A stretch of 64,000 nt of DNA from Basidiobolus meristosporus CBS 931.73 (lineage: Eukaryota; Fungi; Basidiobolomycota): NCBI GenBank assembly GCA_002104905.1, contig MCFE01000441.1, positions 10,243 to 74,242 of the forward strand, written 5' to 3'. The number at the start of each line of letters is the position of its first letter. Within the stretch, counting starts at the first letter, position 1. Shown piece by piece: positions 42,117-64,000 of this stretch. The position numbers and the translations under genes are program-made. A model generated the notes under the pieces. The model worked only from the letters and a program-made list of their open reading frames with translations, was not told the DNA's origin and made no database searches.

Positions 42117-45100
42117 ATGGCGTCTATTCCTGAAAAACGGGAAAATGAGAACAATGAGGAATCTACAACGCTAAACGACTTAGAGTTTACAGAGAAGGTG
42201 GAAGTCACTCCAAATTTAACCGAAGATGTTCCTGACGAAAAAAGCGAGAAAAAACCTGTCGAGCCGAAAGCCAGTATGCGAGAGCTGTTTAACTTCGCCA
42301 CCAAACTCGATCTGTTCTTGATGGTCGTCGGCTTTGTGGCAGCAATTGTCGCAGGCGCTGGTATGCCTTTGATGACGTTAGTATTGTGTTTCTTTCCATG
42401 TTTATACATTAGCACTAACGTTGCGGAAAAATACGGAAAAATAGGGTGATCTTTGGCCAAATGATCAATATATTCAAGGTGTTCAATGTGAAGGCAGCCG
42501 AGGGATATATCTCCCCCGAAGATATCTCCACCTTCCGCTCCGAAATCAACAAATATGCCTTGTACTACGTCTACCTTTCAATCGGGATTTTCGTCACCAC
42601 ATACGCCTATATGTCTACTTGGGTTTATGCCGGTGAACGTCAAACCAGAAAAATTCGCGAATCCTATCTCGCTGCGGTGCTTCGTCAAGAAATAGCTTGG
42701 TTCGATAAGCTGGGTGCTGGTGAGATTACAACCCGAATCACTAGCGATACTCATTTGATTCAGGACGGTATCTCCGAAAAATTCCCTCAGAGTTGCTCTT
42801 ATGTAGCTACATTCATATCTGCTTTTGTCATCGCATTTACGAGAAGCTGGCAGCTTACCCTAGTTCTTTGCTGTATTATTCCCATGATCGCGATCTCAGT
42901 GGGAGTATTGAATATGTTTACCAGCAAGTTTGTCAAACGGGCTCTCGATCACTATTCTATCTCTGGTACGTTGGCTGAAGAGGTGATATCTTCCATTCGG
43001 ACTGCAACAGCATTTGGCCAACAAAAGAAGCTTTCAGAGTTGTACAACAAAAATATCCTCTTGGCAAAGCAGGAGGGATTGAAGAAGGCGTTCTTTTCGG
43101 GTGCCGGAATTGGTGTGATCTACTTTATTATTTATGCCGCTTACTCTCTCGCTTTCTGGTTCGGTGGAAAGCTATTGAACTGGAATGATATTGACGTCGG
43201 CAACGTTTTCAATGTCTTCTTCGCTGTGATTATTGGTGCCTTTTCACTTGGTCACGTCGCTCCTAATCTCCAGGCCTTTGCTTTTGCACAAGGGGCTGCA
43301 GCAAAGCTATACGATGCAATTTATCGGGTCCCTGCTATCGACTCCTCCTCCGCAGAAGGCATCCAACCCACAGAGAGAACTAATGGCCTAATCGAAGCTC
43401 GTGATATTCACTTTACATATCCATCCCGTCCAGATGTTCCCATTCTCAAAGGAATCAACCTAACTGTAGAGCCAGGAAAGACTGTTGCCTTGGTGGGAAC
43501 CAGTGGTTCCGGAAAATCAACGATCATTCAGTTGTTGGAGAGATTCTACGATCCACTGGAGGGTGAGATCCTTCTAGACGGGCGACCTATTAAATCGCTA
43601 AATGTTCACTGGCTTAGACGCCAGATCGGATTAGTGTCCCAGGAGCCGACCTTGTTCAAATGTACTATTGCCGAAAACGTTGCTCACGGCCTGATAGGAA
43701 CTGCCTACGAAAATGAAAGCGCAGAAAAGAAGATGGAGCTTATCGAAGAAGCCTGCAAAATGGCCAATGCTCATGGTTTCATCATGACTTTGCCGAACAA
43801 ATATGACACCCACGTTGGTGAAAGAGGCTTTCTACTTTCTGGGGGCCAAAAGCAGCGTATCGCCATTGCTAGGGCTATCGTCAAAGATCCTCGGATCCTC
43901 TTGTTGGACGAAGCTACATCAGCACTTGATACTCAGTCAGAGGGTATTGTCCAGCAGGCTCTGGATCGTGCTAGTTCTGGCAGAACTACCATAGTGATCG
44001 CCCATCGTCTTTCGACCATTCGCAATGCCGACCAAATCGTTGTAATGGAACGTGGCCAAATCATTGAGACAGGCACTCACAACTCTTTGCTTAACGAAAA
44101 GGGCGCCTATTATAGACTCGTCGAACTCCAAAAGATCGGTAATCAAGATGAAGAGTTGTCAGTTGTTCCTCCACCTGAAGACCAAAATATCACTGCTGCT
44201 ACCACACAAGATTCACAATTGAGACGGCAAACTACACAGCACTCAGTTCTGTCGGTAGGCAGTAGGAAGGACGTCGAGGAGGGTGCTGAGGCAAAACACT
44301 CTTTCCTTTACGTCTGCTACCGCGTATTCCTATTGAACCGGCCGGAGTTGAAATTCATGTTCGGTGGATTGTGTGGTTCTATAGTAGCTGGCGCCGTTTA
44401 CCCCGTTTTCGCTATTATCTTTGCTGAAGTAATTACTGCACTAAGCATCGTGAACGACGACGCAAAGCGTACACGCGAGATCAACTTCTGGGCCTTGATA
44501 TTCCTAATCATTGCGATCGTAATGTTTATCGCCCAAACCGTTCAGGGGACTTTCTTTGGCATCTCTGGCGAAAAATTGACCGAACGAATCCGTGCTATGT
44601 CATTCGCTAATATGCTGAACCAGGAGATCGGGTGGTTTGATCGTGACGAGAATAACACTGGCGCATTGGTATCTGCCTTATCCACCGATGCCACGCATGT
44701 GCAAGGGGTTAGCGGCTCTACATTTGGCACGATCTTACAAGTAGTGGTCAACATTGTTGGTGGATTTGTTGTTGGTCTCGCTTACGGTTGGAAGCTTACC
44801 CTAGTAGTGATGGGTTGCATTCCCCTTCTGATAGGTGCAGGACTCATTCGGATGAGAATGATGAATGGCTATCAACAGAAAACCAAAGCTGCCTACGAAC
44901 ATTCCGCACAACTGGCATGTGAAGCTGCGTCATCGATTCGAACCGTCGCCTCCCTTACTCGAGAACAGGATGTGTGCCGGGAGTATCACGCTGAATTGGA
45001 GGAACCAGTGAAAGCTGGTAAACGGAATGCATTTGGATCTTCCCTTGTGTTCGCACTTTCACAGGCCATTGTGTATCTAGTTAACGCGCTTGGATTTTGG

Positions 45101-46093
45101 TATGGAGGAAGGTTGTTATCTACGATAACCTATTCTGGAACTACCCCAATCCAGGAGTATGATCAGAAGCAATTCTTTGTGGTGTTCATTGCTATTGTGT
45201 TCGGTTCCCAAAGTGCTGGTAACATATTCTCGTTTGTTCCAGATCTTAGCAAAGCTAAACATGCTGCAAGCAGCATCATCGCCCTTTTGGATCGTCAGCC
45301 CCTCATTGATGTAGTTAATGCTCAAGGTGACAGAGTAGAGTCTGTCATGGGGCGTATCACTTACCGAGATGTCCACTTTCGGTATCCTACTCGCCCAGGA
45401 GTTCCGGTACTCCGTGGCTTAAATATTGATATTAAGCCTGGCCAGTTCGCTGCGTTGGTGGGCCCATCAGGCTGTGGTAAGAGCACAGTGATCGGTCTAA
45501 CGGAGCGCTTCTACGATGTTCTTGCTGGAAGCGTTATGATTGATGGAAAGGATGTTCGTCAAATGAATATCAACGATATGCGCAAGCATATTGCCTTGGT
45601 CGGCCAGGAGCCCACGCTTTACGATATGACGATTAGAGAGAACATCTGCTTTGGCTTAGTTGGCCGTGTCCCTTCTCAAGAAGAAATCGAACAAGCAGCT
45701 CGTGACTCCAACATTCATGATTTCATCATGAGTCTTCCTCAAGGTTACGATACTCCACTTGGTGGGAAGGGCTCACAGCTTTCTGGCGGCCAGAAACAGC
45801 GTATTGCGATTGCCCGTGCACTAATTCGCCAGCCGAAGATATTGCTTCTCGACGAAGCCACTTCTGCCCTTGATGCTGCTTCGGAGAAAATTGTTCAGAC
45901 TGCACTGGATAATGCCGCCAAGGGACGAACCACTATTGCGGTGGCGCATCGACTCTCGACAATTCAAAAAGCCGATATTATATACGTATTCAAAAATGGA
46001 GTTGTTAACGAACAAGGCACTCATGATGAACTCATGGCCCTTAGGGGGCAATACTACTCTCTTGTTGTCCAACAAGACTTGAGCACCAACTGA
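42117..46093 (+). CDS. Full-size ABCB (MDR/P-glycoprotein) exporter; intron 42377-42444
   Basis: TMD-NBD-TMD-NBD layout; GTSGSGKST and GPSGCGKST Walker A, LSGGQKQRIAIAR twice, LLLDEATSALD twice; the GTTAGT...ATAG intron restores PLMTVIFG. Confidence 0.97.
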
Positions 46094-46642: not shown

Positions 46643-49600
46643 ATGAACCATACATTAGTTCAGTCAGAGCAGCAATCGCTGCTTGAAGCTCTGTTACTTT
46701 CCATGAAGCGAGTGGACAAGCATCCTACATTGCCCGTTATATATTCTTCCACCATGTGCGCTCTTATGTTTCGATATACCAACTCACAGGTTTTCTCTCT
46801 TCATATCGGAAGTGAGCAGTCCCAAGTGTCGATTTCCCTGTGCCCTGATATGTCCCTCATGGACCTCTTGAAAGTAACCGAGGATCGAATCGTGACGTCA
46901 CTTCGTGGAAGACACCTCTCTATTTCTGAGTTGGCCATCCGCCTGTATGTCACGGATTCATCACCTGTTGTGAATGACAGTTCAGAGATACAAATGCATA
47001 TTAGTTCCACAACCGGCCAGGTAATCGACAGAATCGGCATCAACAAATCTTTGCTTTGTAGTGGCACAGACGTTGTAGGCCATTGGAATGAACTGCTGAG
47101 GCGTTTTGTTGACCAACCAGATGTACCTATATCCGAAGTTGTCCTACTTCCCCCTGTGGAAGCGGAGCTTTTAACCTCCGACGGCTGGGCAACCACTTCC
47201 TTTGTTACCGATACACTGGCTCCATCCGTTGGAGTTTATCTTCACACGGTTTTTGAAAATACCTCCAAAATGTATCCTGGGCGCACAGCGATACTGTTCG
47301 AAAAATCAACTGGCCAGGATGAGGTTTTCACTTACCAAGAAGTTGAAGCTATCTCTACTACATTGGCCAAATACCTGCATGAGAATCACCCTACAGGACC
47401 AGGGGTGTATATTGGCCTATTAATGCCGCAAAAACCGACTGCATATATTGCAATGCTTGCCATCCTTAAGACTGGTTCGGCCTATGTCCCGATTGACCCA
47501 GCATGCCCCTCAGAGCGCATAGAATACATACTCGGCGATTCTCAAGCCGGATTATTGCTGTGTGAAAGGGAAGCAGTAAGAGATAATCTACCATGCCAGA
47601 CATTAGCCTTGGATGATTGGCTGGCGGCCCAGTCATCCTTCAGTGAGAGTTTCAAGCTACCTTCTGGAGTACTTCAAGTAGCAGATCCGGCCTATATGAT
47701 ATATACTAGCGGAACCACTGGTCGGCCAAAAGGTAAACCCAAGCCTATATAGATACTGATGCTGATGGATGCTGACGACTGCATATTACAGGGGTTGTCG
47801 TTGAACATCAAAATGTTGTCAGCTTGGTCAACGCAGAGTATTCCATTTTCAAATTAAATGCTGAAGATCGAGTATATCAGCAGTTCTCCCTTTCCTTCGA
47901 TGCATCTATCGAGGAAATATGGCTACCGTTCAGAGTGGGTGGAACCCTTGTTCCAGCTACTCAGAAGCCAGGTCCAGGACTCTCGGAAACTCTAGAAGCC
48001 AAGGGTGTAACTGTTCTTAGCTGTGTCCCAACCTTACTAACCATGCTGCCGGAAGACGAGAAGTTGCGAAGTCTTCGACTGCTCATTCTGGGAGGAGAAG
48101 CTTGCCCCAAATCCGTAGTGGAAAGATTCGGTATTGGCTGTCGGATTGTAAATAGCTATGGGCCGACCGAAACAACGGTAAGTGATTATGCTCGGTCCAT
48201 TTTGAAATCATAGAAACTCAATTTTGTTAGGTGATTGCGACATGGAAAGAATGCAATCCAACTGATGATATTGTGACAATTGGACGACCAATCCCTGGGT
48301 ATTCGGCTTTCATCATGTCAGCACATAATCAACTTCAGCCTGTAGGGGTCGCAGGAGAATTGGTTATTGGGGGTCCCGGTGTCACACGGGGGTATCACAA
48401 CCTTCCCGAGCTTACAAGGAGCAAATACATCAAAAATACATCCCTGGATTCCGAGGGGCGGTTATACAAAACTGGTGATCTGGCTCGGTTTAATGCTGCC
48501 GGGGAAATTGAGTATTTGGGCCGTATCGATACCCAAGTGAAGCTACGTGGCTTTCGAATCGAGCTTGCCGAGGTTAGCACCTTTCTGTTGTATGCATGGG
48601 ATGTTCTGTCGTACTCAAGTACATTTCAGGTAGAATCAGCACTGCAAGCTTGCGAAGGCATACAGCTGGCTGTGGCTACTGTAGATGTGGATGTATTTAG
48701 CATGGAGCATCTAGTGGCATACGTGGTTCCGACTGGCAACGAGGCCTTCTTGGACTTTCAGGCCATAAAAGATAATCTTCAGAAAAAAATGCCTAGCTTC
48801 ATGGTTCCCTCCACCTTCCAGGTAATACAAGATGTACCAACTTTGCCAAGCGGAAAAATCGATCGCAAGAGTCTACCAAAGATGTCACCTGACGTTGCGG
48901 TCTCTGTAAAAGATGAATCCAAACCAACCATTGCCCCGAGAACCCCGACGGAGGCAAAACTAGTGGACGTTTGGACCCGTTACTTCAACGGTAAAGCCAT
49001 ATCGGTATCGGATAACTTTTTTGATCTTGGTGGCCATTCGCTCTTTGCTGCTATGCTCATCTCAGAACTACGTAGCAGTGAGTGCACAAAAGGCATCTCG
49101 ATGGGACATATATATCAATTTCCCGTTCTAGAAAACCTGGCTGCCTTCCTTGACACTGGTTTATCCACTGAGACTAGGCATGTTAGCAAGAACAGTAATA
49201 TAGATCGAGGAAACAGTGATGTTGAGAAGTTGAGCAATTTGGAGAGAGTTGATTTTCCACCTACGCCTAGCTACTTGCATACTTTCGGTCGTATGATCTG
49301 TCAGCTCGCAGCAATACTAACGGTTTTCCTTGTAACGACACTACCAGTATCAATCTTGTACATGTTATACAAGTTCACAGAAACTCCGTTAGCCGTCGTG
49401 TTAGTGCTTTTTGCCCTGGATTTTTGTTGGATGGCTGTGATCGTAGTTGCTTTGAAGTGGATCTTGATCGGGCGGTACCGTGAAGGAAAATGGCCACTTT
49501 GGGGGGCCTATTACTGGCGTTGGTGGGTTGTAAGAAGCTGCACAAGAGTGCTCAAGTTGTATATCCTCGAGGGATCTCCACTCCTTAACCTTTTTTACAA

Positions 49601-51733
49601 TCTTATGGGAGCAAAGATCCACATGACAGCCTATGTTGGAACCCGCCACGTATACTGTTTTGACCTCGTTACCATCAGGGAAGAAGCATCTATTGGTCTG
49701 AATGCGTATCTAAACGGATACAAGGTTGAGAATGGATGGCTTATCATTGGAGCGGGAAACATCGTAGGCGCTGGTGCACGGGTTGGAAATAAGTCGCATT
49801 TGGGGCTGAATGCAGAACTCCAAGATGGGGCTAGCCTTGATGACTTATCGGTTCTCCAAGATGATCAACAAATCCCAACGAACGAAAGGTGGGCGGGGTC
49901 GCCGGCAAAGTTGGTAGAGCACACAAATGTCAGGGATAAAGAAGACTCCACATCTCAGTTGACTATCTGGATATTTTGCCTGTTGCATTTCATTGCCGCC
50001 ATATTTGTAAACATCGCCTTTGGATTGTTGGCGTCACTCACAGGTAGGTGAATTCCGAAGTTGGTTATTTATGCCATGTCTCACAAAGCTTTGAATAGGG
50101 ATCGTCGTGTTGGAAGCCATACCCGTCTTGCTGCCAACTTTCAATCCATATATTACAGTCATTTTGGCCACTCCGTTTGTTTCAATAATTGCCATGACTC
50201 TTTTCTGTCTTGGGGTAGTCTTGCTGAAGTTAATGATTCTTCCCAAGATATCTCCTGGAGAGTATACACTGAGGGGCTTATTTTACTTACGTAAATGGTA
50301 GACTGTCACTATCAAGTATAGCCTCGATCATATTCTCACACCTTTAGTGCTCTAGGTGCTTAGACATATTGATGCAGATCTCGCTTGAAATGACCAACTC
50401 AATCTATGGAACCCTATATGCACCTCACTGGCTTCGCGCCCTAGGTGCAAAAATCGGGAAAGCCTCTGAGGTTTCCACTATTACATATATATCCCCAGAC
50501 CTTCTGAGAATAGGAGACGGGTGTTTCCTCGCGGATTCTGTGATAGTTGGCCCCCCATATGTTCGCCATGGGAAACTATCTCTTGACTATGCGACAGTAG
50601 AGGAGCGCTCTTTCGTTGGAAATGGCGCACTTTTCCCTGCGGGGGTAACAATGGGTAGGTTAGATTATTTTATGAAACTGGATGATCATTAACGTGGTTC
50701 AGGTAAGGATTGCCTCCTTGGAGTACTCTCAACACCAGGCCACGACAAGAGATCTTTGGAAGGAAACAGCTCCTGGCTTGGGTCCCCATCCATGTATCTC
50801 CCCAATCGACAAGCAGCTACCAAAAATTGGCCGAAAGAGCGTACCTATGCTCCTTCAAATAGTCTATACATAGTTCGCTATTTAATGGAACTCTGGCGAG
50901 TCTTCTTGCCCAATATGGTCAATATCACGGCTTTCGTCATTGTGGTAATGATATTGGAGCTACTTTACGAGCGAACATCCAGTCGAAAGATTCTTTCCGT
51001 TGCAGATGAATTTATGTTGAGCAATGGTCTTTTCACCAACTTATCTCAAGGAGGTCTAATTGCCTCGTTTCTACCAATCTTTCTGATAGTCAATAGTGTT
51101 GTGGCTGCGGGTGCTTGTGGGTTCGTCCTGATCATGAAATGGATACTAATAGGCACTTATGCGAAGCGCGAAGTGCCATTGTGGAGTTCTTTCGTGTGGA
51201 GGTTGGTAATCATCCAGGATTCCCGATAACGTGCTCTCCGTTACTAAAATTCAATTAGGACAGAGCTAATAACAGCTCTACAAGAAGGAATAGCCAATAG
51301 GCAGTTACTTCAAAATTTGCGTGGTACTCCGTTAGTGTGCTTTTGGTTTAGAATGCTAGGAAGTCAGATAGGTGACCGCGTATGGATGGACACTTTACAA
51401 ATCACTGAGGCTGACCTGATTCACATCGATGATGATGTCTGTATTGGTGAAGATACGATACTACAGGTAGATTCCATATTTGCGTTAAGTGCATTGGCCC
51501 AAGATTTAAACAACCGCCATTTCTTGCAGACACATCTTTTTGAAGACCGAATCATGAAGATGGATAGCTTGAAGATTGGTTGCCGTTCTAATGTTGGCTC
51601 ATCCTCAGTAATCTTGTATGGGTCTACTTTAGAGGAAGGTGTTTCGATTGGAGCTCTTTCTTTAGTAATGAAGGGCGAAAGATTACCATCCCATACTGGG
51701 TGGAATGGAATCCCTCTGAGCAATAACTGCTAA
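46643..51733 (+). CDS. Pls (epsilon-poly-L-lysine synthetase)-like single-module NRPS: partial C remnant, A, T, membrane segments with three beta-helix terminal repeats; about 9 introns
   Basis: A motifs YMIYTSGTTGRPKG, FDASIEEIW, NSYGPTETT, YKTGDL, GRIDTQVKLRGFRIEL, SGKIDR. T motif DNFFDLGGHS (Ser 49038-49040). Three terminal repeats KWILIGRY...WPLW / GAKIG / GTPL...LGSQIG / QTHLFEDRIMK. The frame is kept across all traced introns. Confidence 0.88.
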
Positions 51734-53308: not shown

Positions 53309-55249
53309 ATGTCTAAAGCTGTCGGAATTGATTTGGGAACCACCTACTCCTGCGTTGGTGTCTGGCAAAACGATCGTGTAGAGATTATTGCCAACGACCA
53401 GGGTAACAGAACCACTCCCTCCTATGTTGCTTTCACAGACTCTGAGCGTCTCATCGGTGATGCCGCCAAGAACCAAGTTGCCATGAACCCCACCAACAGT
53501 GTGTTCGATGCCAAGCGCCTCATTGGTCGTCGTTTCAACGACTCCGAGGTCCAATCCGATATGAAGCACTGGCCTTTCAAGGTTGTTGAGAAGGACTCCA
53601 AGCCCCTGATCCAAGTTGAATACAAGGGTGAGAGCAAGACCTTCACTCCTGAAGAAATTTCCTCCATGATCTTGTTAAAGATGAGAGAGACCGCTGAGGC
53701 CTATCTCGGTGGTGAGGTGAAGAGCGCCGTTATCACCGTTCCTGCCTACTTCAACGACTCTCAGCGCCAAGCTACTAAGGATGCCGGAGCTATTGCTGGT
53801 ATGAATGTTCTTCGTATCATCAACGAGCCTACCGCCGCCGCCATTGCCTACGGTCTTGACCAAAAGACCAGTGGTGAGAAGAATGTCCTCATTTTCGATC
53901 TCGGAGGAGGTACCTTCGATGTCTCCCTCTTGACCATTGAGGATGGTATCTTCGAAGTCAAGGCCACTGCTGGTGATACTCACTTGGGTGGTGAAGATTT
54001 CGATAATCGTCTTGTCAACCACTTTGTCCAAGAGTTCAAGCGTAAGAACAAGAAGGACTTGTCCAGCAATGCTCGCGCCCTTCGTCGTCTCAGAACTGCA
54101 TGTGAGCGTGCTAAGAGAACCCTTTCATCTGCTGCTCAAACCTCCATTGAGATTGACTCCTTGTTCGAGGGGATTGACTTCTACACCTCCTTGACTCGTG
54201 CCAGATTCGAGGAACTCTGCCAAGACTTGTTCCGTTCCACCATGGACCCTGTCGAGAAGGTTCTTCGTGACTCCAAAATTGACAAATCCAATGTCCACGA
54301 GATTGTCCTTGTTGGAGGATCCACCCGTATCCCCAAGATCCAGAAACTCGTCTCTGATTACTTCAACGGCAAGGAGCCCAACAAATCCATCAACCCTGAT
54401 GAGGCTGTTGCCTATGGTGCCGCTGTCCAAGCTGCTATCTTGTCTGGAGATACCTCTGAGAAGACTCAAGACTTGCTTTTGCTCGATGTTGCTCCTCTCT
54501 CCTTGGGTATTGAGACAGCGGGAGGAGTGATGACTCCCTTGATCAAGAGAAACACCACCGTCCCTACTAAGAAGTCCGAGACCTTCTCTACCTATGCCGA
54601 TAACCAGCCGGGAGTGTTGATTCAGGTCTTTGAAGGTGAGCGTGCCCGTACCAAGGACAACAATATCCTTGGCAAATTCGAGCTTACCGGTATCCCACCT
54701 GCTCCTCGTGGAGTTCCTCAAATCGAGGTTACCTTTGATGTTGATGCCAACGGTATCTTAAACGTGTCTGCTTTGGACAAGACCACCGGTCGCTCAAACA
54801 AGATCACCATTACCAATGATAAGGGGCGTCTCTCCAAGGAGGATATCGAGCGCATGGTGTCTGAGGCCGAGAAGTACAAGGCTGAGGATGAAGCCGCTGC
54901 CTCTCGTATTTCAGCCAAGAACGGACTTGAGTCCTATGCCTATTCTCTCCGCAACACCATTCAAGACGAGAAGGTTGCAGGGCAATTGGAGGTTGATGAC
55001 AAGAAGAAGCTTGAGGAAGCCATCAACAACACCATCAGCTGGTTGGACAACAGCCAAGAAGCCTCTAAGGAGGAATACGAAGACAAGCAAAAGGAGTTGG
55101 AAGGTGTTGCCAACCCCATCATGACCAAGATGTACCAAGCTGCTGGTGGTGCTCCAGGTGCTGCTCCAGGAGGGTTCCCTGGAGGTGCCGCCCCTGGTGG
55201 ATTCCCTGGTGCCGATAGCGGTGAACCAACTGTTGAAGAGTTAGATTAA
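53309..55249 (+). CDS. HSP70: Cytosolic Hsp70 (Ssa type), intronless
   Basis: [38 protein letters not shown] repeats; ends PTVEELD. Confidence 0.99.
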
Positions 55250-56149
55250 ATAGCGAATTGAGAACACTATATTCATGTATTTAACAATGTACACTAATTA
55301 TAAATCTGTGATTATTTCATGTAGTCTTAGCCTTGCATCTTAGAATAAATGAATGTTTTAAGAAAACATTGAGATATTTTAGGTGTATTATCAATGAATA
55401 GATCCGAGGAGTTCTATTTTAATGCATATTGGCAGGTATAGATAACGAATATTGCAACAAGACTTTCAAACTAGCAATGTGTTATCAGGCAAGAATCGAA
55501 GGTTAATCATAATTTTGGGCGAGAAATATTCGGAGACTGAGGTGCTAATGGGCTTGCAAAACTGCAAGTCTACCACTGCACCACCGATAGTCCTACTGAG
55601 TTATTAGTGAAGTTCTGCCAATCATGTTGATAATAAAACTGAATGCCACTAAATATTAGAATGAAATCTGCGAAAGTAAGTCGGGCTATACTAACAATAA
55701 TAATAATGCCTAATATCTATATTGTGATACATCAAGTACTGATTGTCATGTGCATTCTTATGCCGGAGTCCTTATTTCAAGTGAAATATAGAAGCCAGTG
55801 TTAGTTTTGTAGCCAACATATAAGGGCTTGAAGCTGGGGGGAGTTGGTATGTATTGTTGTATCCAAGAGAAAAGTGTAATAAAACTCTTGGATGAGTTAG
55901 CTGAACCCAAGTGACAACTAAGTGCAGAATCTTAAATTGTCAAGAGTGACAGAAATATTAGCAGTGAGGTTCTGGTCTAATATTGGTCTTGTATATACTT
56001 GAGTTGGGCTATAAAGGTGACAGAGTTGGTTTGCTATGCAAGCTAGGGTTGGTGCTCTTGGGAGTGCTAGATATGCTAGGCTTGGGTGGAAACTAGAACA
56101 GAATTGTCAAATTCTTAATTTTGCTGAGGCACAATCTTAATTTTGTTGA

Positions 56150-56685
56150 GACACATTAAACCAAAAGGTTCAGTAATCTTTATTTATATTTTTCTGATCA
56201 AGTTGAATTAGTAAGTGCCAGGAGACTGGACTAATTGAAATCTGTTGGGGTGTTGATAGGTGCATAAGATAAATGAAAAATTGCATCATTAATCAGCTGA
56301 TGTTGTGGCAACTACTAAGTGGTTGGATAGATCTCAGATGACTAATTCTTTGTAAAGGCTTAGCAGATCAGTTGAGGATGTAATGATCACATGAAAATTG
56401 ATCAGGCGTGACAGCTAAAAATAGCTTCTGCAAAGTGATAAAATAAACCATAACAGGAATCAGTTATATTTGGGTTAGGGAAAATCAGTTAGGGTACTAG
56501 ATTTTCTAACAGAGTGAAATTGGCTAAGTTTTAAATGTTGATGCACAACATCATTTCCTCCTGGGAGAGGAGTTTTCTGATACCCTCTGGGTTCCCCTGT
56601 GGCTCCAATACTGATCAATGATGGCAACATCATCAAAGTTGGTGTAGGTTCCCTGGTGTTGTGTTTGGAATCATAACCTTTCCAC
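56150..56685 (-). mobile_element. Candidate non-autonomous unit 0 of the retroelement array
   Basis: Starts after the CCCCCCTAA junction (56686-56694). Ends in AAATAAAGATT plus a variant AACC-TTTT-GGTT hairpin (56159-56184). About 535 bp, CpG-poor, no convincing ORF. Confidence 0.45.
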
Positions 56686-56694
56686 TTAGGGGGG

Positions 56695-57431
56695 AGACAG
56701 TCACCAACAGGTGAAATCTTTATTTCAGTTGAAACAAAGAAGCCAGCGCTACTGTTGTAGCTTTGATACAAGAGTGTGTAGCTGAGGGGAATTTGTAGGT
56801 AAGTTAATAAGAAGTGATGATAGTTCTTCAGTGCTCAAGACACTGTTCAGTGGGAAGGGGGGTAGCAAGAGAGGTAAGAATGACTTGTGAACAACATTAA
56901 TGAGGGGAATGTGATAAGGATTGATATTCATCATAAAGGGAGTGTGCTGCTGCAGATATTGCTGCCAAAGGTCTGTCAAGCACTTCAGGTAGGCCAGCTT
57001 GGGTTTTTCTGACTGCAGAATAAATTCAGCAAACTTCTTGACTTCAGGATCTCCAAGCATAGTTCTCCAGCAGGAGCCAGGAGTTGTGTGGTGTGTTCTC
57101 TTCCAGGCCTTAATCAGTGGGTTGTTGCAGTTGTGAAGTCTGAGGTATAATCTGGTTCTAAGGTAGAGAAGTCTGATCTTATAGGGCATAAACCCAAAAG
57201 CACCAAGAACAGCATGTCTGTAGGGGCATTCAGGCAAATGAGGCACCAAGGTGGTAATGCACCATACTGCAAACTTGTCAAGCTTAGTGCAGTTGCTAGA
57301 AGTAAGAGAGAGAAGTGGTAAGCCAAATTCCAGGACAGGGAAGACAAACTGCTTGAGTAGAAGGAGGCAGCTGGGAGCTGAAGTTGTAGGAGGAGTAACA
57401 GCCAACAGCTTGTGGAGTGCCTGTCTTAGAG
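56695..57431 (-). mobile_element. 5'-truncated copy (unit A) of the APE-RT LINE
   Basis: Near-identical to the 3' ~735 bp of units B and C, including the 3' hairpin at 56701-56714. Confidence 0.93.
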
Positions 57432-57439
57432 TTAGGGGG

Positions 57440-57958
57440 AGGAAAGTCACCAAGTGGTGAAATCTTTATTTACTTATGACAAGTATCTAAAGAAGCCAAG
57501 TTAATCTGAAGTTATTCCTAGAAAGCTAGGTCTGAGAGATATCTTCCTGGTAAGCCAGGTCTGAGAGTTGAGAGGCTGAGTGGTACTATATTTCCTAGTT
57601 AGCTAGGTCTGAGAGAGGTTTCCTGGAAAGCCAGGCCTGAGAAGTGCAAATCTGAATATATCTGAGCTAAGTTATACTGGTTTGCGGTAGCTGAATTGTG
57701 GCCGGAATGGCCAGTAGACTGGGGAAACTGAGAGGAATTTCTGGGCAATCACTGGCCAAATTTACTAGGCAAATCTGGCCAATTAGCATTTCAAGGATCT
57801 CAGCCAATCAGAGCCTTTACTTTGCCCGATGGTTGATCAAGCCATCTCCCAATGAGCACACATCAATTTATTAATCAAATTTTGCTGGATCCAGGATTTG
57901 AACCCACAACCATGGGTATGGAAGGGTTAGGGATAACCACAAGGCTAAGTGTTCTTGG
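57440..57958 (-). mobile_element. tRNA-derived SINE-like element with LINE-type 3' end
   Basis: A-box TAGCCTTGTGG (57947-57937) and B-box GGTTCAAATCC (57904-57894) at tRNA spacing; internal duplicated block (~57515-57645); 3' AAATAAAGATTTCACC-ACTT-GGTGA. Confidence 0.78.
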
Positions 57959-57968
57959 TTAGGGGGGG

Positions 57969-58931
57969 ATGATAATCACCACAGGGTGAAATCTTTATTT
58001 AAATCATAAATAAAGAAGCCAAATTTGAACATGAATATTTGAGATGCAGTAAGCCTACAAGATAAACTTGGACTTTGCTGTATCCCAAATATCCTCAATA
58101 CTGAAGTCAAGTGGAGAATGTAGCAAAACTGCCTGTTCACTGTAGTATTTCTTGAGGAAGTTTGTGACTTGAAGGGAAGGAGAGTTTTTCAACAAGCTGG
58201 TAAACCTTTTGAGGAGTTCTTTTTCCAGAGAGAATGGGACAAAGAGTGGAATGTCCAAATGATGTCTGAATATATGTTCTGAGAGCTCCCAATCCAGCAT
58301 ATTTTTGACTTCTTCTGTAAAATCTTCAACAATATCTTTGTCAAGAATTACTTCCAAGAGATCCCTAGCAATGTACTGAATGTTAATAATCTTAGGCATA
58401 TGAATACCTAGGTCCTTGAGGTAGTTTCTTTGTTCTGAAATTGGGAGATAGCCAGCATTTCTGAAATAGCAAACAGCCCAATTGGCAGTGGGAGGAGTAT
58501 CAGGGCTGACAGGGAATCTTCTTCTGGCTTTAGGGTGCACTGGCTTAGGTGACTGTCTTATTGAAAGGGTAGCTGGCTTTGGATGAGCTTGAAGTGCTTG
58601 GGAGTATGTATGAGTATGAATAATAGGAGTTGCTGGTTGCTGACAGTAGTCAGATTGACTGGAAGAAGAGCTGGTTGAGGGGTTGCAAGGTAAGGAAGAA
58701 GCTGAGAGAGAAGTAGAGAGTGCTGGGTGAAGTTCAGAGAGAGTTTTGAAAAGAACCTGGATCTGAGATTTCAACATTGAGTTTTCAACTTCAAGAAGAG
58801 AAACTCTTTGTTCAAGGTAAGAAGTCTGTAAAGAGTGAAAGTTGGGTAAAGACATGGAAGGAGTAGATAATAAGAAGAAAGGAGTAGTTGGGGTGGGAGG
58901 GTGGGAAAATAGTTAAGAAGAAAAGAGAGGG
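57969..58931 (-). mobile_element. ORF1-only retroelement unit
   Basis: Bounded by TTAG(n) junctions; pyrimidine-rich 5' UTR, a single 266-aa ORF, then AAATAAAGATTTCACC-CTGT-GGTGA. Confidence 0.75.
58055..58855 (-). CDS. LINE ORF1-like protein (coiled coil, Pro/Ser linker, putative RRM-like domain)
   Basis: LEQRVSLLEVENSMLKSQIQVL heptads; TYSQAL; PISEQRNYLKDLGI..KIINIQYI..LLEVIL resembles ORF1 proteins of early-diverging-fungal LINEs (from memory, not searched). Confidence 0.65.
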   Translation of the reverse strand: MSLPNFHSLQTSYLEQRVSLLEVENSMLKSQIQVLFKTLSELHPALSTSLSASSLPCNPSTSSSSSQSDYCQQPATPIIHTHTYSQALQAHPKPATLSIRQSPKPVHPKARRRFPVSPDTPPTANWAVCYFRNAGYLPISEQRNYLKDLGIHMPKIINIQYIARDLLEVILDKDIVEDFTEEVKNMLDWELSEHIFRHHLDIPLFVPFSLEKELLKRFTSLLKNSPSLQVTNFLKKYYSEQAVLLHSPLDFSIEDIWDTAKSKFIL

Positions 58932-58940
58932 TTAGGGGGG

Positions 58941-61766
58941 AGACAGTCACCAACAGGTGAAATCTTTATTTCAGTTGAAACAAAGAAGCCAGCGCTACTG
59001 TTGTAGCTTTGATAAAAGAGTGTGTAGCTGAGGGGAATTTGTAGGTAAGTTAATAAGAAGTGATGATAGTTCTTCAGTGCTCAAGACACTGTTCAGTGGG
59101 AAGGGGGGTAGCAAGAGAGGTAAGAATGACTTGTGAACAACATTAATGAGGGGAATGTGATAAGGATTGATATTCATCATAAAGGGAGTGTGCTGCTGCA
59201 GATATTGCTGCCAAAGGTCTGTCAAGTACTTCAGGTAGGCCAGTTTGGGTTTTTCTGACTGCAGAATATAGTGAGCAAACTTCTTGACTTCAGGATCTCC
59301 AAGTATAGTTCTCCAGCAGGAGCCAGGTGTAGGGTGGTGTGTTCTCTTCCAGGCCTTAATCAGTGGGTTGTTGCAGTTGTGAAGTCTGAGGTATAATCTG
59401 GTTCTAAGGTAGAGAAGTCTGATCTTATAGGGCATAAACCCAAAAGCACCAAGAATAGCATGTCTGTAGGGGCATTCAGGCAAATGAGGCACCAAGGAGG
59501 TAATTCACCATACTGCAAACTTGTCAAGCTTAGTGCAGTCTCTAGAAGTAAGTGAGAGAAGTGGTAAGCCAAATTCCAGGACAGGGAAGACAAACTGCTT
59601 GAGTAGAAGGAGGCAGCTGGGAGCTGAAGTTGTAGGAGGAGTAACAGCCAGTAGCTTGTGGAGTGCCTGTCTTGCCAGGATAATTCTCTTCTTCAGGTGT
59701 GCTCCAGAGTCTAGTCCAGTTGGAAGGAAAGGAAAGCCAAGATATGTAGCAGAAACCTGAGCAGGTAGAGTGGAGTTCTCCAAGTTGATGGGAGAGCCCA
59801 AAGGTACTGTCTTTGCAATGGAAAGCTGGAGATTATTCTTCTGCAGATACTGGTGGATGGTCTGGGAGTCTTGTTGCACATTGGAGGAGGATACTCTGAT
59901 GTCATCAGCAAAGAGAGTAACCAAGCAGTCAGCTGAGAGTCTTGGGAAATCATTCAGGAAGATGGCAAACAGTATAGGACCAAGCACAGAGCCTTGAACC
60001 ACTCCATTAGGAACTGAGAACACAGCTGATTGCTCACTTGGGTGCAGAATTCTTGCTTGTGGATCCAGAAACAGAGACCTGACAAGGAGGGTGAGAGAGG
60101 TACTGGAGAAGCATTGCAACTTGGACCAAAGCAGATTTCTGTCAACTGAATCAAAGGCCTTAGTAATATCAAACAGAACTGAGGGATACTTGCACTGGAG
60201 AGAGTGATCTTGGCTAAGTATGACTGCATATTCCAAGGAGAGGCCAGGAACAAAGCCAAACTGTGCAGGATGAAACTTGAGGGAGTCAGAGTAGAGCTCC
60301 TGAGCAAGCAGAAGCTCAAACACCTTTCTGCAGGTGGGCAGCAGAGATATTGGCCTGTAGGAGCTAGGATCCAGGTGCTTTCCTTTACCCTTGTACAGTG
60401 GCAGAACATTTGCAAAGGACCACTCCTCAGGAGTAGAAAGCTGGGCTGAGCATTGCTGAAACAGTGGAAGCAGAAGTGCAGACATGGCCTTGGTACTAGT
60501 CTTCAGAAGCTCATAGGAGATTGTGTCCACACCTGGAGCAGTAGAGTTGGGAAGCCTCTGGAGCACATTATGGATTCTCCTTTGATCAAGTGCAAGTGGG
60601 ATGGGCAGAGTCTTGAAGTCAGGATGAAAGCCAGGAGTTGAGTACTGCTTTGTAGAGAAGAAGATGTTAGCCAGCTGTTCTGTTGAAGGTAACTTCCTGG
60701 AAGAGGGCCTCATTGCCCTGTAGAGTCTTGATACTGTTCTTGTTATAGAGTTGGAAGATTGCAGAGGCAAGGAACTCATAATATGATCCCAGAGCTGAGT
60801 ATGCAGAGTGTGGTGAATTGCCTTGGAGTGGTGTATTGCTGTCAGGAGGAGTTTCTCTGTTTTTGGGTTAGGGAAACTCAGGTAGCTTTGTTGCAGGGCT
60901 GAATCAATGGATTCCCATTTTCTTGAGGTAACAGCAGTAGTCTTGCATGGCAGTGAGAGGGAGGCAGACACCAGAATCAGATGCTTCACAAAGAGCCAGG
61001 CAATAGTTGAGATCATCTGGCAGAGAAAGTAGCAAACTGGCAAGCTTCAAGTAGTTCCCAAAGTCTTTCTTCTGATTCTTGGTAGCTTTGTGGGTGAGCA
61101 CAGTAAGTTTTGGCAGCTTCTTCTTCACAACTGGTTGCATAGAAAGGGACCAGGCTGGGTGGTCAGAGGCTCTCAAGGATCCTAGCTCAGCTCCAGAAAA
61201 TTGCTTAACTTCATTCACAAAGTAGAGGGCAGCAGCAGAAGGGCAGATCCAGTCAACACATCTTTTCTCAGATTGAGCACCTAGTGCTAGCAGGTGGCTT
61301 TCTCTCAGGAAGCTCAGTAGGAATGTAGACCTTGGCTTCATTCTTGCAGTCAGAGTAGTCTTGTTCTCAGGATGGGGAATGTTGAGATCTCCAAGCAAGA
61401 TAACAGGTGTTGATATAGATTGTTGGTATTGCTGAACCTTCTGGCATATAACTTGCACTTCCTGAAGGGCAAGACTTGGAGGCAGATAGCAGAGCACCAG
61501 ACTGATAGTTGGCAACTGGAGAGCAGCACAGTAAGGGGAGTAAAGAGGAACACAGAGCTGAGGAGTATTGATGGTAGAAGAGATGAAGCAGATAGAGGAG
61601 GTATTCTTTGTTCTAGGAGTAGAAAAGCAATATAGATTAGTCAAAAGTATAGAGGGTAGCTGGACATCAATCAAACACAGGAGGGAAAATCTTGATAGAA
61701 GTCTCTCTAGAGTTGGTCTTGATGGCTGTATGCTGTTGCAGTTAAGCAACAGAACTTCAGGTAGTC
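58941..61766 (-). mobile_element. APE-RT non-LTR retrotransposon unit B (ORF2 only; one frameshift near 61000 and one stop at 59505)
   Basis: APE: LLNCNS, LCYLPP, LGDLN, CVDWI, ASDH. RT: YRPISLLPTCRKVFE, QFGF, FDITKAFDSV, GVVQGSVLGPILF, LFADD, YLG. No RNase H; 3' UTR of about 50 nt. Confidence 0.95.
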
Positions 61767-61778
61767 TTAGGGGGGGGG

Positions 61779-64000
61779 AGACAGTCACCAACAGGTGAAA
61801 TCTTTATTTCAGTTGAAACAAAGAAGCCAGCGCTACTGTTGTAGCTTTGATACAAGAGTGTGTAGCTGAGGGGAATTTGTAGGTAAGTTAATAAGAAGTG
61901 ATGATAGTTCTTCAGTGCTCAAGACACTGTTCAGTGGGAAGGGGGGTAGCAAGAGAGGTAAGAATGACTTGTGAACAACATTAATGAGGGGAATGTGATA
62001 AGGATTGATATTCATCATAAAGGGAGTGTGCTGCTGCAGATATTGCTGCCAAAGGTCTGTCAAGTACTTCAGGTAGGCCAGCTTGGGTTTTTCTGACTGC
62101 AGAATAAATTCAGCAAACTTCTTGACTTCAGGATCTCCAAGTATAGTTCTCCAGCAGGAGTCAGGTGTAGTGTGGTGTGTTCTCTTCCAGGCCTTAATCA
62201 GTGGGTTGTTGCAGTTGTGAAGTCTGAGGTATAATCTGGTTCTAAGGTAGAGAAGTCTGATCTTATAGGGCATAAACCCAAAAGCACCAAGAATAGCATG
62301 TCTGTAGGGGCATTCAGGCAAATGAGGCACCAAGGAGGTAATGCACCATACTGCAAACTTGTCAAGCTTAGTGCAGTCTCTAGAAGTAAGTGAGAGAAGT
62401 GGTAAGCCAAATTCCAGGACAGGGAAGACAAACTGCTTGAGTAGAAGGAGGCAGCTGGGAGCTGAAGTTGTAGGAGGAGTAACAGCCAGTAGCTTGTGGA
62501 GTGCCTGTCTTGCCAGGATAATGCTCTTCTTCAGGTGTGCTCCAGAGTCTAGTCCAGTTAGGAAGGAAAGGAAAGCCAAGATATGTAGCAGAAACCTGAG
62601 CAGGTAGAGTGGAGTTCTCCAAGTTGATGGGAGAGCCCAAAGGTACTGTCTTTGCAATGGAAAGCTGGAGATTATTCTTCTGCAGATACTGGTGGATGGT
62701 CTGGGAGTCTTGTTGCACATTGGAGGAGGATATTCTGATGTCATCAGCAAAGAGAGTAACCAAGCAGTCAGCTGAGAGTCTTGGGAAATCATTCAGGAAG
62801 ATGGCAAACAGTATAGGACCAAGCACAGAGCCTTGAACCACTCCATTAGGAACTGAGAACACAGCTGATTGCTCACTTGGGTGCAGAATTCTTGCTTGTG
62901 GATCCAGAAACAGAGACCTGACAAGGAGGGTGAGAGAGGTACTGGAGAAGCATTGCAACTTGGACCAAAGCAGATTTCTGTCAACTGAATCAAAGGCCTT
63001 AGTAATATCAAACAGAACAGAGGGATACTTGCACTGGAGAGAGTGATCTTGGCTAAGTATGACTGCATATTCCAAGGAGAGGCCAGGAACAAAGCCAAAC
63101 TGTGCAGGATGAAACTTGAGAGAGTCAGAGTAGAGCTCCTGAGCAAGCAGAAGCTCAAACACCTTTCTGCAGGTGGGCAGCAGAGATATTGGCCTGTAGG
63201 AGCTAGGATCCAGGTGCTTTCCTTTACCCTTGTACAGTGGCAGAACATTTGCAAAGGACCATTCCTCAGGAGTAGAAAGCTGGGCTGAGCATTGCTGAAA
63301 CAGTGGAAGCAGAAGTGCAGACATGGCCTTGGTACTAGTCTTCAGAAGCTCATAGGAGATTGTGTCCACACCTGGAGCAGTAGAGTTGGGAAGCCTCTGG
63401 AGCACATTATGGATTCTCCTTTGATCAAGTGCAAGTGGGATCGGCAGAGTCTTGAAGTCAGGATGAAAGCCAGGAGTTGAGTACTGCTTTGTAGAGAAGA
63501 AGATGTTAGCCAGCTGTTCTGTTGAAGGTAACTTCCTGGAAGAGGGCCTCATTGCCCTGTAGAGTCTTGATACTGTTCTCGTTATAGAGTTGGAAGATTG
63601 CAGAGGCAAGGAACTCATAATATGATCCCAGAGCTGAGTATGCAGAGTGTGGTGAATTGCCTTGGAGTGGTGTATTGCTGTCAGGAGGAGTTTCTTTGTT
63701 TTTGGGTTAGGGAAGCTCAGGTAGCTTTGTTGCAGGGCTGAAACAATGGATTCCCATTTTCTTGAGGTAACAGCAGTAGTCTTGCATGGCAGTGAGAGGG
63801 AGGCAGACACCGGGAATCAGATGCTTCACAAAGAGCCAGGCAAAGTTGAGATCATCTGGCAGAGAAAGTAGCAAACTGGCAAGCTTCAAGTAGTTCCCAA
63901 AGTCTTTCTTCTGATTCTTGGTAGCTTTGTGGGTGAGCACAGTAAGTTTTGGCAGCTTCTTCTTCACAACTGGTTGCATAGAAAGGGACCAGGCTGGGTG
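61779..64000 (-). mobile_element. APE-RT unit C (continues beyond the window; indels near 62560 and 63810)
   Basis: Near-identical to unit B over about 2.2 kb; 3' hairpin at 61785-61798. Confidence 0.95.

Follow-up and report, generated by a model that had tools for sequence, protein, structure and literature searches.

We argue that a gene of the fungus Basidiobolus meristosporus CBS 931.73 likely encodes a functional synthetase of the Pls/PosA family, a single-module, membrane-embedded enzyme that would build a homopolymer of one amino acid, most likely lysine. The gene lies in a stretch of 64,000 nucleotides (contig MCFE01000441.1, positions 10,243 to 74,242 of the forward strand) that we call the window. 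It fills positions 46643-51733 of the plus strand and is a single intact gene. Nine exons and 8 introns give a coding sequence of 4641 nt and a protein of 1546 amino acids without an internal stop. We modelled the gene from six-frame open reading frames (ORFs), from reading frames and GT..AG boundaries, and by comparison with the protein of P0014, a close paralogue.

That the gene belongs to the Pls/PosA family of homopoly(amino acid) synthetases is as good as certain. A Pfam scan of the gene matched AMP-binding, AMP-binding_C, PP-binding and Hexapep, and no thioesterase (TE), reductase (R) or conventional condensation domain. The NCBIfam model TIGR02353, which describes the terminal domain of Pls/PosA, matches four exon pieces (model positions 36-251, 329-423, 510-563 and 624-694). 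The public version of the protein, P0153 in our set, scores 473.6 against a curated cut-off of 423.1 despite the errors in its gene model. The three closest relatives score 522.9, 550.1 and 537.4 against the same cut-off. The adenylation (A) domain has motifs A3, A4, A5, A7, A8 and A10, and TSGTTGRPKG, FDAS, NSYGPTE, YKTGD, GRIDTQVKLRG, PTLPSGKIDR and GGHSL can all be located.

The rest of the protein alternates between membrane and soluble segments. Six hydrophobic segments form three pairs in the hydropathy profile, with short loops within the pairs. Three soluble repeats are mutually alike (pairwise z of 8.5, 16.6 and 23.7 over shuffles). Given the short loops within the helix pairs, the A domain, the thiolation (T) domain and all three soluble units must face one side of the membrane, presumably the cytosolic one. 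An AlphaFold model of the C-terminal 706 residues of another paralogue, P0151, was made from a 41-sequence alignment. It has a pLDDT of 88.9 and a pTM of 0.89, and consists of three repeats of a long-helix pair and a beta-rich unit. In the model the short-strand pattern of these units fits a beta-helix. PosA of Acinetobacter baumannii (8g95-8g98) shares both family and architecture with the window gene, and its AlphaFold model also has three beta-helices on six bent helices (PMC10522769).

Foldseek found no solved structure that matches the whole of the P0151 C-terminal model. Single units match hexapeptide-repeat acyltransferases and gamma-carbonic-anhydrase-like proteins. Serine, maltose and galactoside acetyltransferases are best, and their fold matches each of the C units. 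In hexapeptide-repeat acyltransferases a nucleophile receives the acyl group of a pantetheine thioester, and the active site is at the trimer interface. These enzymes are soluble homotrimers that use acyl-CoA, whereas here three diverged units are found in one chain. These units are anchored by six membrane helices, and the predicted donor is a carrier-domain thioester.

The specificity code of the A domain reads DAESIGSVIK. It was read from the anchors FDxS, PT, GGE, YGPTE and GKxDR, and independently from the columns of a 120-sequence alignment. The Pls of Streptomyces albulus has DAESIGTVVK, and its lysine substrate is experimentally proven (PMC10522769 Supplementary Table 2). The two codes are identical at 8 of 10 positions and differ only by T>S and V>I. 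The eight-residue signature of BacB-M1-Lys is DAESIGSV (PMC3207962). The codes of enzymes with other substrates are less alike: DMEHNGTVSK for ornithine in PosA, DFECLSAVTK for a diaminobutyric acid (Dab) synthetase, DFEYVGTVTK for a diaminopropionic acid (Dap) synthetase and DGESVSVVNK for a beta-lysine synthetase (PMC10522769). Structure and mutagenesis show that position 2 of the code sets the chain length: it is Ala where lysine is the substrate, Met for ornithine and Phe for Dap or Dab (PMC10522769). Changing Met218 of PosA to Ala raises lysine activation about 10-fold (PMC10522769). PosA is limited to the chain length of ornithine by this Met, whereas the window gene has Ala. The pattern DAESIG[ST]V[IV]K is found in 112 of the 120 aligned family proteins, window gene included. 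With good confidence we predict L-lysine as the substrate from these pocket residues.

A preliminary description of this DNA, made from the letters alone, had already seen much of this. It described an A and a T domain and membrane segments alternating with three related repeats, without TE or R, and Pfam, hydropathy, the repeat scores and the paralogue model all bear that out. It named TIGR02353 as the model to try, and the public protein is above the cut-off. The A-domain motifs and the phosphopantetheine serine that it called intact are all there (Ser743 in GGHSL). Its ten-residue code is the one obtained here by both routes. The BacB lysine signature that it gave is in print, and the closeness to the Pls code that it noted comes down to two conservative differences. 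As a full account of the architecture it falls short, since it does not mention the N-terminal ~195 amino acids discussed below.

A different cationic amino acid could be the substrate, with family and mechanism unchanged. The candidates are ornithine, arginine, beta-lysine, D-lysine and a lysine that is hydroxylated or methylated, and the product would then be a different isopeptide polymer or a short oligomer. The window gene belongs to a subclade of N-extended proteins in which we know of no characterised enzyme. Positions 7 (Ser for Thr) and 9 (Ile for Val) differ from Pls, and both contact the side-chain amine in PosA (PMC10522769). The family has also produced surprises, namely ornithine in PosA, an arginine preference in a Bdellovibrionales enzyme and beta-lysine for DGESVSVVNK (PMC10522769). 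However, Asp1, Ala2 and Glu3 are identical to those of the proven lysine enzymes. The Ser at position 7 retains the hydroxyl, and BacB-M1-Lys has Ser there too (PMC3207962). The known non-lysine members all differ at position 2, where they have M, F, G or S (PMC10522769). We consider a substrate other than plain L-lysine unlikely.

If L-lysine is the substrate, the mechanism can be sketched as follows. The A domain would adenylate a diamino acid, most likely L-lysine, which would then be loaded as a thioester onto the phosphopantetheine arm of the T domain. The C-terminal domain would be an acyltransferase in which three membrane-helix hairpins carry three left-handed beta-helix units packed as a pseudo-trimer. 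There the thioester would be attacked by a side-chain amine, belonging either to a free lysine or to the free, growing chain. The polymer would extend by isopeptide bonds and would never be tethered. A chain that grows untethered does not need a TE or R domain for its release. The product would be a polycation of the epsilon-poly-L-lysine type (abbreviated epsilon-PL), and we are moderately confident in predicting an epsilon-PL-like polymer. Its way out would probably lead through the helix bundle or past it, and it would probably antagonise competing microbes where the fungus lives, in gut and dung.

Several points weigh against this reading. The A-domain core scores 207 bits against S. albulus Pls (7wew), 242 against GrsA and 239 against PosA. 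It is no closer to Pls than to the other two, so the lysine call comes from the pocket residues and not from overall closeness. Code-based calls in the Pls/PosA family have gone wrong earlier, and PosA proved to be an ornithine enzyme. The want of a characterised enzyme in the N-extended subclade counts here too, as does the identity to the nearest bacterial relatives, which is only 38-41%. Thirteen columns that are conserved in the family are altered in the window copy; examples are D766H (T domain), G937H and G956R (both C1). Unlike the pls operons of Streptomyces and Corynebacterium, the window gene has no adjoining peptidase gene. Unlike their bacterial sisters, the fungal copies have no adjoining phosphopantetheinyl transferase (PPTase) gene. 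It must also be noted that we infer splicing from frames, splice sites and paralogue conservation, and that expression is presumed. One search for sequencing runs turned up DNA runs and no RNA run.

The N-terminal segment is informative about the origin of the gene. It is conserved in the 4 Basidiobolus proteins, and some of the longer bacterial homologues have N-termini that align with it. A single-sequence Pfam search with the N-terminal 200 amino acids of the window protein gave no match. A profile of 13 N-termini does match the second half of condensation domains with solved structures, namely those of McyB (E 1.6e-19) and, at chain positions ~230-490, of Txo1 and Txo2. The bacterial relative P0161 has a sub-threshold Pfam Condensation match. 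The HHxxxDG motif is absent from the ~195 amino acids, so the segment is a predicted non-catalytic condensation remnant. It is also the fastest-evolving part of the protein, with a rate of nonsynonymous change (dN) of 0.44.

To collect relatives, the C-terminal domain from Basidiobolus served as the query, and its 120 best matches were taken. No fungal protein beyond the four from Basidiobolus is among these 120. The others are at most 41% identical, and every named one is bacterial. At least 587 stretches in species-representative bacterial and archaeal genomes, from many phyla, encode a relative, the best of them 40% identical. A search of the representatives with a 605-aa exon piece was dominated by multi-module megasynthetases, whose A-T domains sum up, and P0014 was the sole useful match. 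In maximum likelihood trees the Basidiobolus proteins form one clade (support 100) on a long stem of 0.85-0.9 changes per site. This clade is inside a 20-row clade (99 by SH-aLRT) of N-extended proteins of 1440-1560 aa that includes Pedobacter cryoconitis. When rooted on Dab/Dap-type enzymes, a tree that has neither a confirmed Pls nor Epls places the N-extended group within the lysine-code radiation. The outgroup enzymes have DFE... codes and came from a word search started at an Embleya locus.

The N-extended bacterial proteins (P. cryoconitis at 1488-1489 aa; P0195, P0161, P0179, P0192 and P0203) are the nearest clade, with the same remnant and lysine-type codes. They differ from the window gene in their 38-41% identity and in being uninterrupted ORFs. 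Two sister genes, P0195 and P0192, are in dense bacterial neighbourhoods. Directly downstream of each is a PPTase gene that overlaps the synthetase 3' end (L084 10596-11231 and L085 10590-11324). A PPTase (PF01648) is fused to the synthetase in several more distant family members.

The fungal genes tell a different story from these uninterrupted ORFs. There are three family copies in B. meristosporus, window gene included, and one in B. ranarum. By exact mapping the paralogues P0014 and P0151 and the B. ranarum gene P0152 each have 8 introns, in the same alignment columns as the window gene. This implies that the introns were gained before the duplications and before B. meristosporus and B. 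ranarum split. Synonymous sites are saturated between the Basidiobolus copies (proportion of synonymous differences, pS, 0.71-0.77), and dN is 0.20-0.29. A fungal clade nested among uninterrupted bacterial genes, with shared introns and saturated synonymous sites, points to an old bacterial transfer, with intron gain and duplication following within Basidiobolus. The donor would have been a member of the bacterial subfamily with the N-terminal condensation remnant. Tabima et al. 2020 list the paralogue K493DRAFT_300898 as a horizontally acquired NRPS-like (nonribosomal peptide synthetase-like) gene with a best hit in Firmicutes, and do not identify its likeness to Pls. Our transfer reading agrees with that listing.

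A sceptic could instead treat the locus as bacterial contamination or mis-assembly, since the nearest relatives outside Basidiobolus that can be identified by name or genomic context are bacterial. Yet the gene has eight short GT-AG introns whose positions are conserved in four genes of two species. Eukaryotic genes, for an ABCB transporter and an Hsp70, are on both sides of it on the same contig. The GC content of the locus is the same as that of the surrounding sequence. DNA contigs of the source sequencing run span the whole stretch without a difference, and the other contigs found there are cross-matches from paralogues. The introns and flanking eukaryotic genes rule out contamination, and we give this explanation next to no weight.

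Fungal members of the family have been described before. Epls of Epichloe festucae and Claviceps has the same architecture and a lysine pocket (PMC7179176), which bears out the statement in the preliminary description that epsilon-PL synthesis is reported for Epichloe. Overexpression of Epls raised epsilon-PL output and turned a non-producing strain into a producer (PMC7179176). Its reported identity to S. albulus Pls is 51%, and it occurs mainly in the Clavicipitaceae (PMC7179176). Fungal proteins other than those of Basidiobolus are absent from the 120 best matches described above. Given this absence and the closeness of Epls to Pls, Basidiobolus likely acquired its gene independently of the ascomycetes. 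S. albulus Pls itself shares with the window gene the order A-T-(TM pair + C unit) x3 (TM, transmembrane helix), the lack of TE and R, and the TIGR02353 family. Over a 128-aa central segment of the A domain only, the two are ~49% identical by eye. Pls is 1319 aa long and has neither an N-terminal condensation remnant nor introns, whereas the window protein has 1546 aa and its gene has both.

The conservation of the gene is what would be expected of a working copy. In 116 relatives from outside Basidiobolus, 189 columns reach at least 95% conservation, and the window copy retains 176 of them. Most of the 13 altered ones are common to all four Basidiobolus genes. Conserved columns that are kept, together with low dN at saturated synonymous sites, are the pattern of a working gene. 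One could still suppose that the gene is intact and also silent, redundant or recruited to another task, such as aminoacylating a membrane or wall acceptor, with no polycation secreted. With three paralogues single copies may be dispensable, and the imperfect public gene model suggests weak transcript support. Corynebacterium variabile has a working pls and yet no detectable epsilon-PL in culture. Against this, purifying selection is strong along the full length, including all three C units, and every recognisable catalytic motif is kept. Tabima et al. 2020 report that most predicted secondary-metabolite genes of CBS 931.73 are expressed at or above housekeeping level, although the window gene is not named. 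A silent or recruited gene is very unlikely in our judgement, and we continue to regard it as a working synthetase. A more speculative idea is that a polycation synthetase of the uncharacterised bacterial subfamily with the N-terminal remnant was acquired independently of Epls and that the three diverged copies were kept for distinct products, for instance different chain lengths, or polymers other than plain epsilon-polylysine, which would shape the life of the fungus among gut bacteria. We offer this as a tentative suggestion.

Upstream of both P0151 and the B. ranarum gene P0152, short-chain dehydrogenase genes lie on the opposite strand (L002 3626-4688 and L003 4017-5901). These shared neighbours hint at orthology by synteny. 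Contrary to this hint, the tree places P0152 outside the three B. meristosporus copies.

The positions of all features are given in Table 1. The start ATG at 46643 and the stop TAA at 51731-51733 are where the preliminary description put them. It counted about 9 spliceosomal introns; the introns are of the spliceosomal GT-AG type, and their number is 8. Its suggestion of long residence in the genome is upheld by the intron positions, all 8 of which recur in the two paralogues and the B. ranarum gene. All introns are GT..AG and 48-63 nt long. Introns 1, 2, 4, 5, 6 and 7 carry stops, and introns 3 and 8 do not. When intron 3 is excised, the A8 motif regains its context RIELAEVES. A different donor/acceptor pair for intron 5, at 50291/50363, was ruled out by the paralogues, which read ...LRKW-CLD....

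Table 1. Features of the synthetase gene, in positions of the 64,000-nucleotide window
Feature	Position	Strand	Details
Exons 1-5	46643-47732, 47792-48177, 48231-48572, 48630-50043, 50099-50297	+	gene model
Exons 6-9	50356-50654, 50703-51201, 51259-51466, 51530-51733	+	gene model
Intron 1	47733-47791	+	59 nt, phase 1, GTAAAC..TTACAG; same alignment column in 4/4 Basidiobolus genes
Intron 2	48178-48230	+	53 nt, phase 0; position common to 4 Basidiobolus genes
Intron 3	48573-48629	+	57 nt, phase 0, in frame, stop-free; common to 4 Basidiobolus genes
Intron 4	50044-50098	+	55 nt, phase 1; position common to 4 Basidiobolus genes
Intron 5	50298-50355	+	58 nt, phase 2; common to 4 Basidiobolus genes; junction ...LRKW/CLD... 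agrees with paralogue P0014
Intron 6	50655-50702	+	48 nt, phase 1; position common to 4 Basidiobolus genes
Intron 7	51202-51258	+	57 nt, phase 2; position common to 4 Basidiobolus genes
Intron 8	51467-51529	+	63 nt, phase 0, in frame, stop-free; common to 4 Basidiobolus genes
Condensation-domain remnant (predicted; ~195 aa, C-terminal half)	46643-47227	+	profile search
Adenylation domain, aa ~200-690, introns 1-3 inside	47240-48881	+	PF00501, PF13193; TIGR01733 390.8 on P0153
Code residues D400 A401 E404 S440 I462 G464 S485 V493 I494 K682	47899-48857	+	anchors, alignment
Code ends	D400 = 47899-47901, K682 = 48855-48857	+	alignment
Ser743 codon in GGHSL, T-domain phosphopantetheine site	49038-49040	+	PF00550, 25.8 bits against cut-off 20.8
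TM1-TM2, aa ~828-885	49293-49466	+	hydropathy maxima 2.17, 2.74
Soluble repeat C1, aa ~886-1045, left-handed beta-helix unit	49467-49946	+	TIGR02353 36-251, repeat similarity, paralogue model
TM3-TM4, aa ~1050-1125, intron 4 between	49959-50241	+	hydropathy; TM4 in exon 5
Soluble repeat C2, aa ~1128-1305, introns 5 and 6 inside	50248-50887	+	TIGR02353 329-423, repeat similarity
TM5-TM6, aa ~1310-1392	50900-51148	+	hydropathy
Soluble repeat C3, aa ~1393-1546, introns 7 and 8 inside	51149-51730	+	TIGR02353 510-694
QTHLFEDR, family-invariant motif in C3	51464-51466 and 51530-51550	+	split by intron 8

The gene is in the public record under a different guise. P0153 is GenBank ORX89509.1, "acetyl-CoA synthetase-like protein" of B. 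meristosporus CBS 931.73, a strain that the NCBI taxonomy now places in Basidiobolomycota and earlier placed in Zoopagomycota. The deposited name is misleading. Our spliced protein is 98% identical to it over 1077 residues and 94% identical over the last 400. Exact mapping shows that the deposited model retains introns 3 and 8. It also goes from exon 4 to exon 6, omitting exon 5 and with it the fourth membrane helix. The retention of intron 8 puts 21 extra residues inside QTHLFEDR, the motif that is best conserved across the family. With one membrane helix missing and an insert in that motif, expressing the protein as deposited would probably fail. The public model of the paralogue P0014 (locus L001 12665-12694) has a different intron 7 junction with ~8 added residues (QVNVLTPW) and leaves an implausible 28-nt gap. 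This is probably another annotation slip.

A full-size ABCB transporter of the multidrug resistance (MDR) type, with two ABC_membrane and two ABC_tran domains, is encoded at 42446-46093(+), and 550 bp separate its end from the synthetase downstream. The transporter may serve for export or for self-protection. It is not found at the paralogue loci. Further upstream are CLASP-, CUE- and kinase-like ORFs. An intronless Hsp70 gene (53309-55249, plus strand; PF00012 at 875 bits), an ordinary eukaryotic neighbour, lies 1.6 kb downstream of the synthetase. The paralogues adjoin a P-type ATPase and a major facilitator superfamily (MFS) gene, or the short-chain dehydrogenase genes. Since the neighbours differ, a conserved gene cluster is ruled out.

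It is worth considering how much of this is new. Earlier publications already describe the family, show that fungi and other eukaryotes have it, and report the transfer of bacterial NRPS genes into Basidiobolus. Homologues of Pls/PosA were tabulated in 2023 from Ascomycota, Basidiomycota, Amoebozoa, Metazoa and Alveolata, along with a Mortierellaceae entry (PMC10522769). Our literature search found no paper on Basidiobolus that mentions polylysine, and the top-ranked papers for Zoopagomycota, Mucoromycota and Mortierella made no mention of poly-L-lysine. Basidiobolus is unreported as a carrier or producer in the literature searched. New here are the recognition of Pls/PosA genes in Basidiobolus, their number (at least three copies, alike in intron positions), the N-terminal remnant as a mark of the donor subfamily, and the corrected gene model. 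The preliminary description took an early-diverging fungal producer to be new. The link between Basidiobolus and polylysine was indeed not found in the literature, but the gene is in GenBank, the paralogue 300898 was listed in 2020 and the Mortierellaceae homologue was tabulated in 2023.

B. meristosporus is a frog-gut fungus. Epsilon-polylysine is sold as a food preservative, and isopeptide polycations related to it are under study as antimicrobials and as cell-penetrating carriers. To our knowledge the proven eukaryotic producers are so far a few clavicipitaceous ascomycetes only. With its three conserved synthetase genes, this culturable and early-diverging fungus allows a direct test of polymer production outside Dikarya. 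Its genes also give experimental access to the uncharacterised N-extended branch of the family. They are a clean, datable case of a bacterial gene turned into a normal fungal gene, with 8 introns gained before duplication and speciation. Given the errors in ORX89509.1, the corrected model is of practical use for expression work.

The Mortierellaceae entry belongs to Podila minutissima. Its protein KAF9322632.1 has a Dap-type code and is listed under "Actinobacteria" (PMC10522769 Supplementary Table 2). The protein may represent a further homologue in an early-diverging fungus, or an endobacterium may be its source. Finally, the last 8 kb of the window (56000-64000) have a strong positive GC skew of 0.23-0.32.

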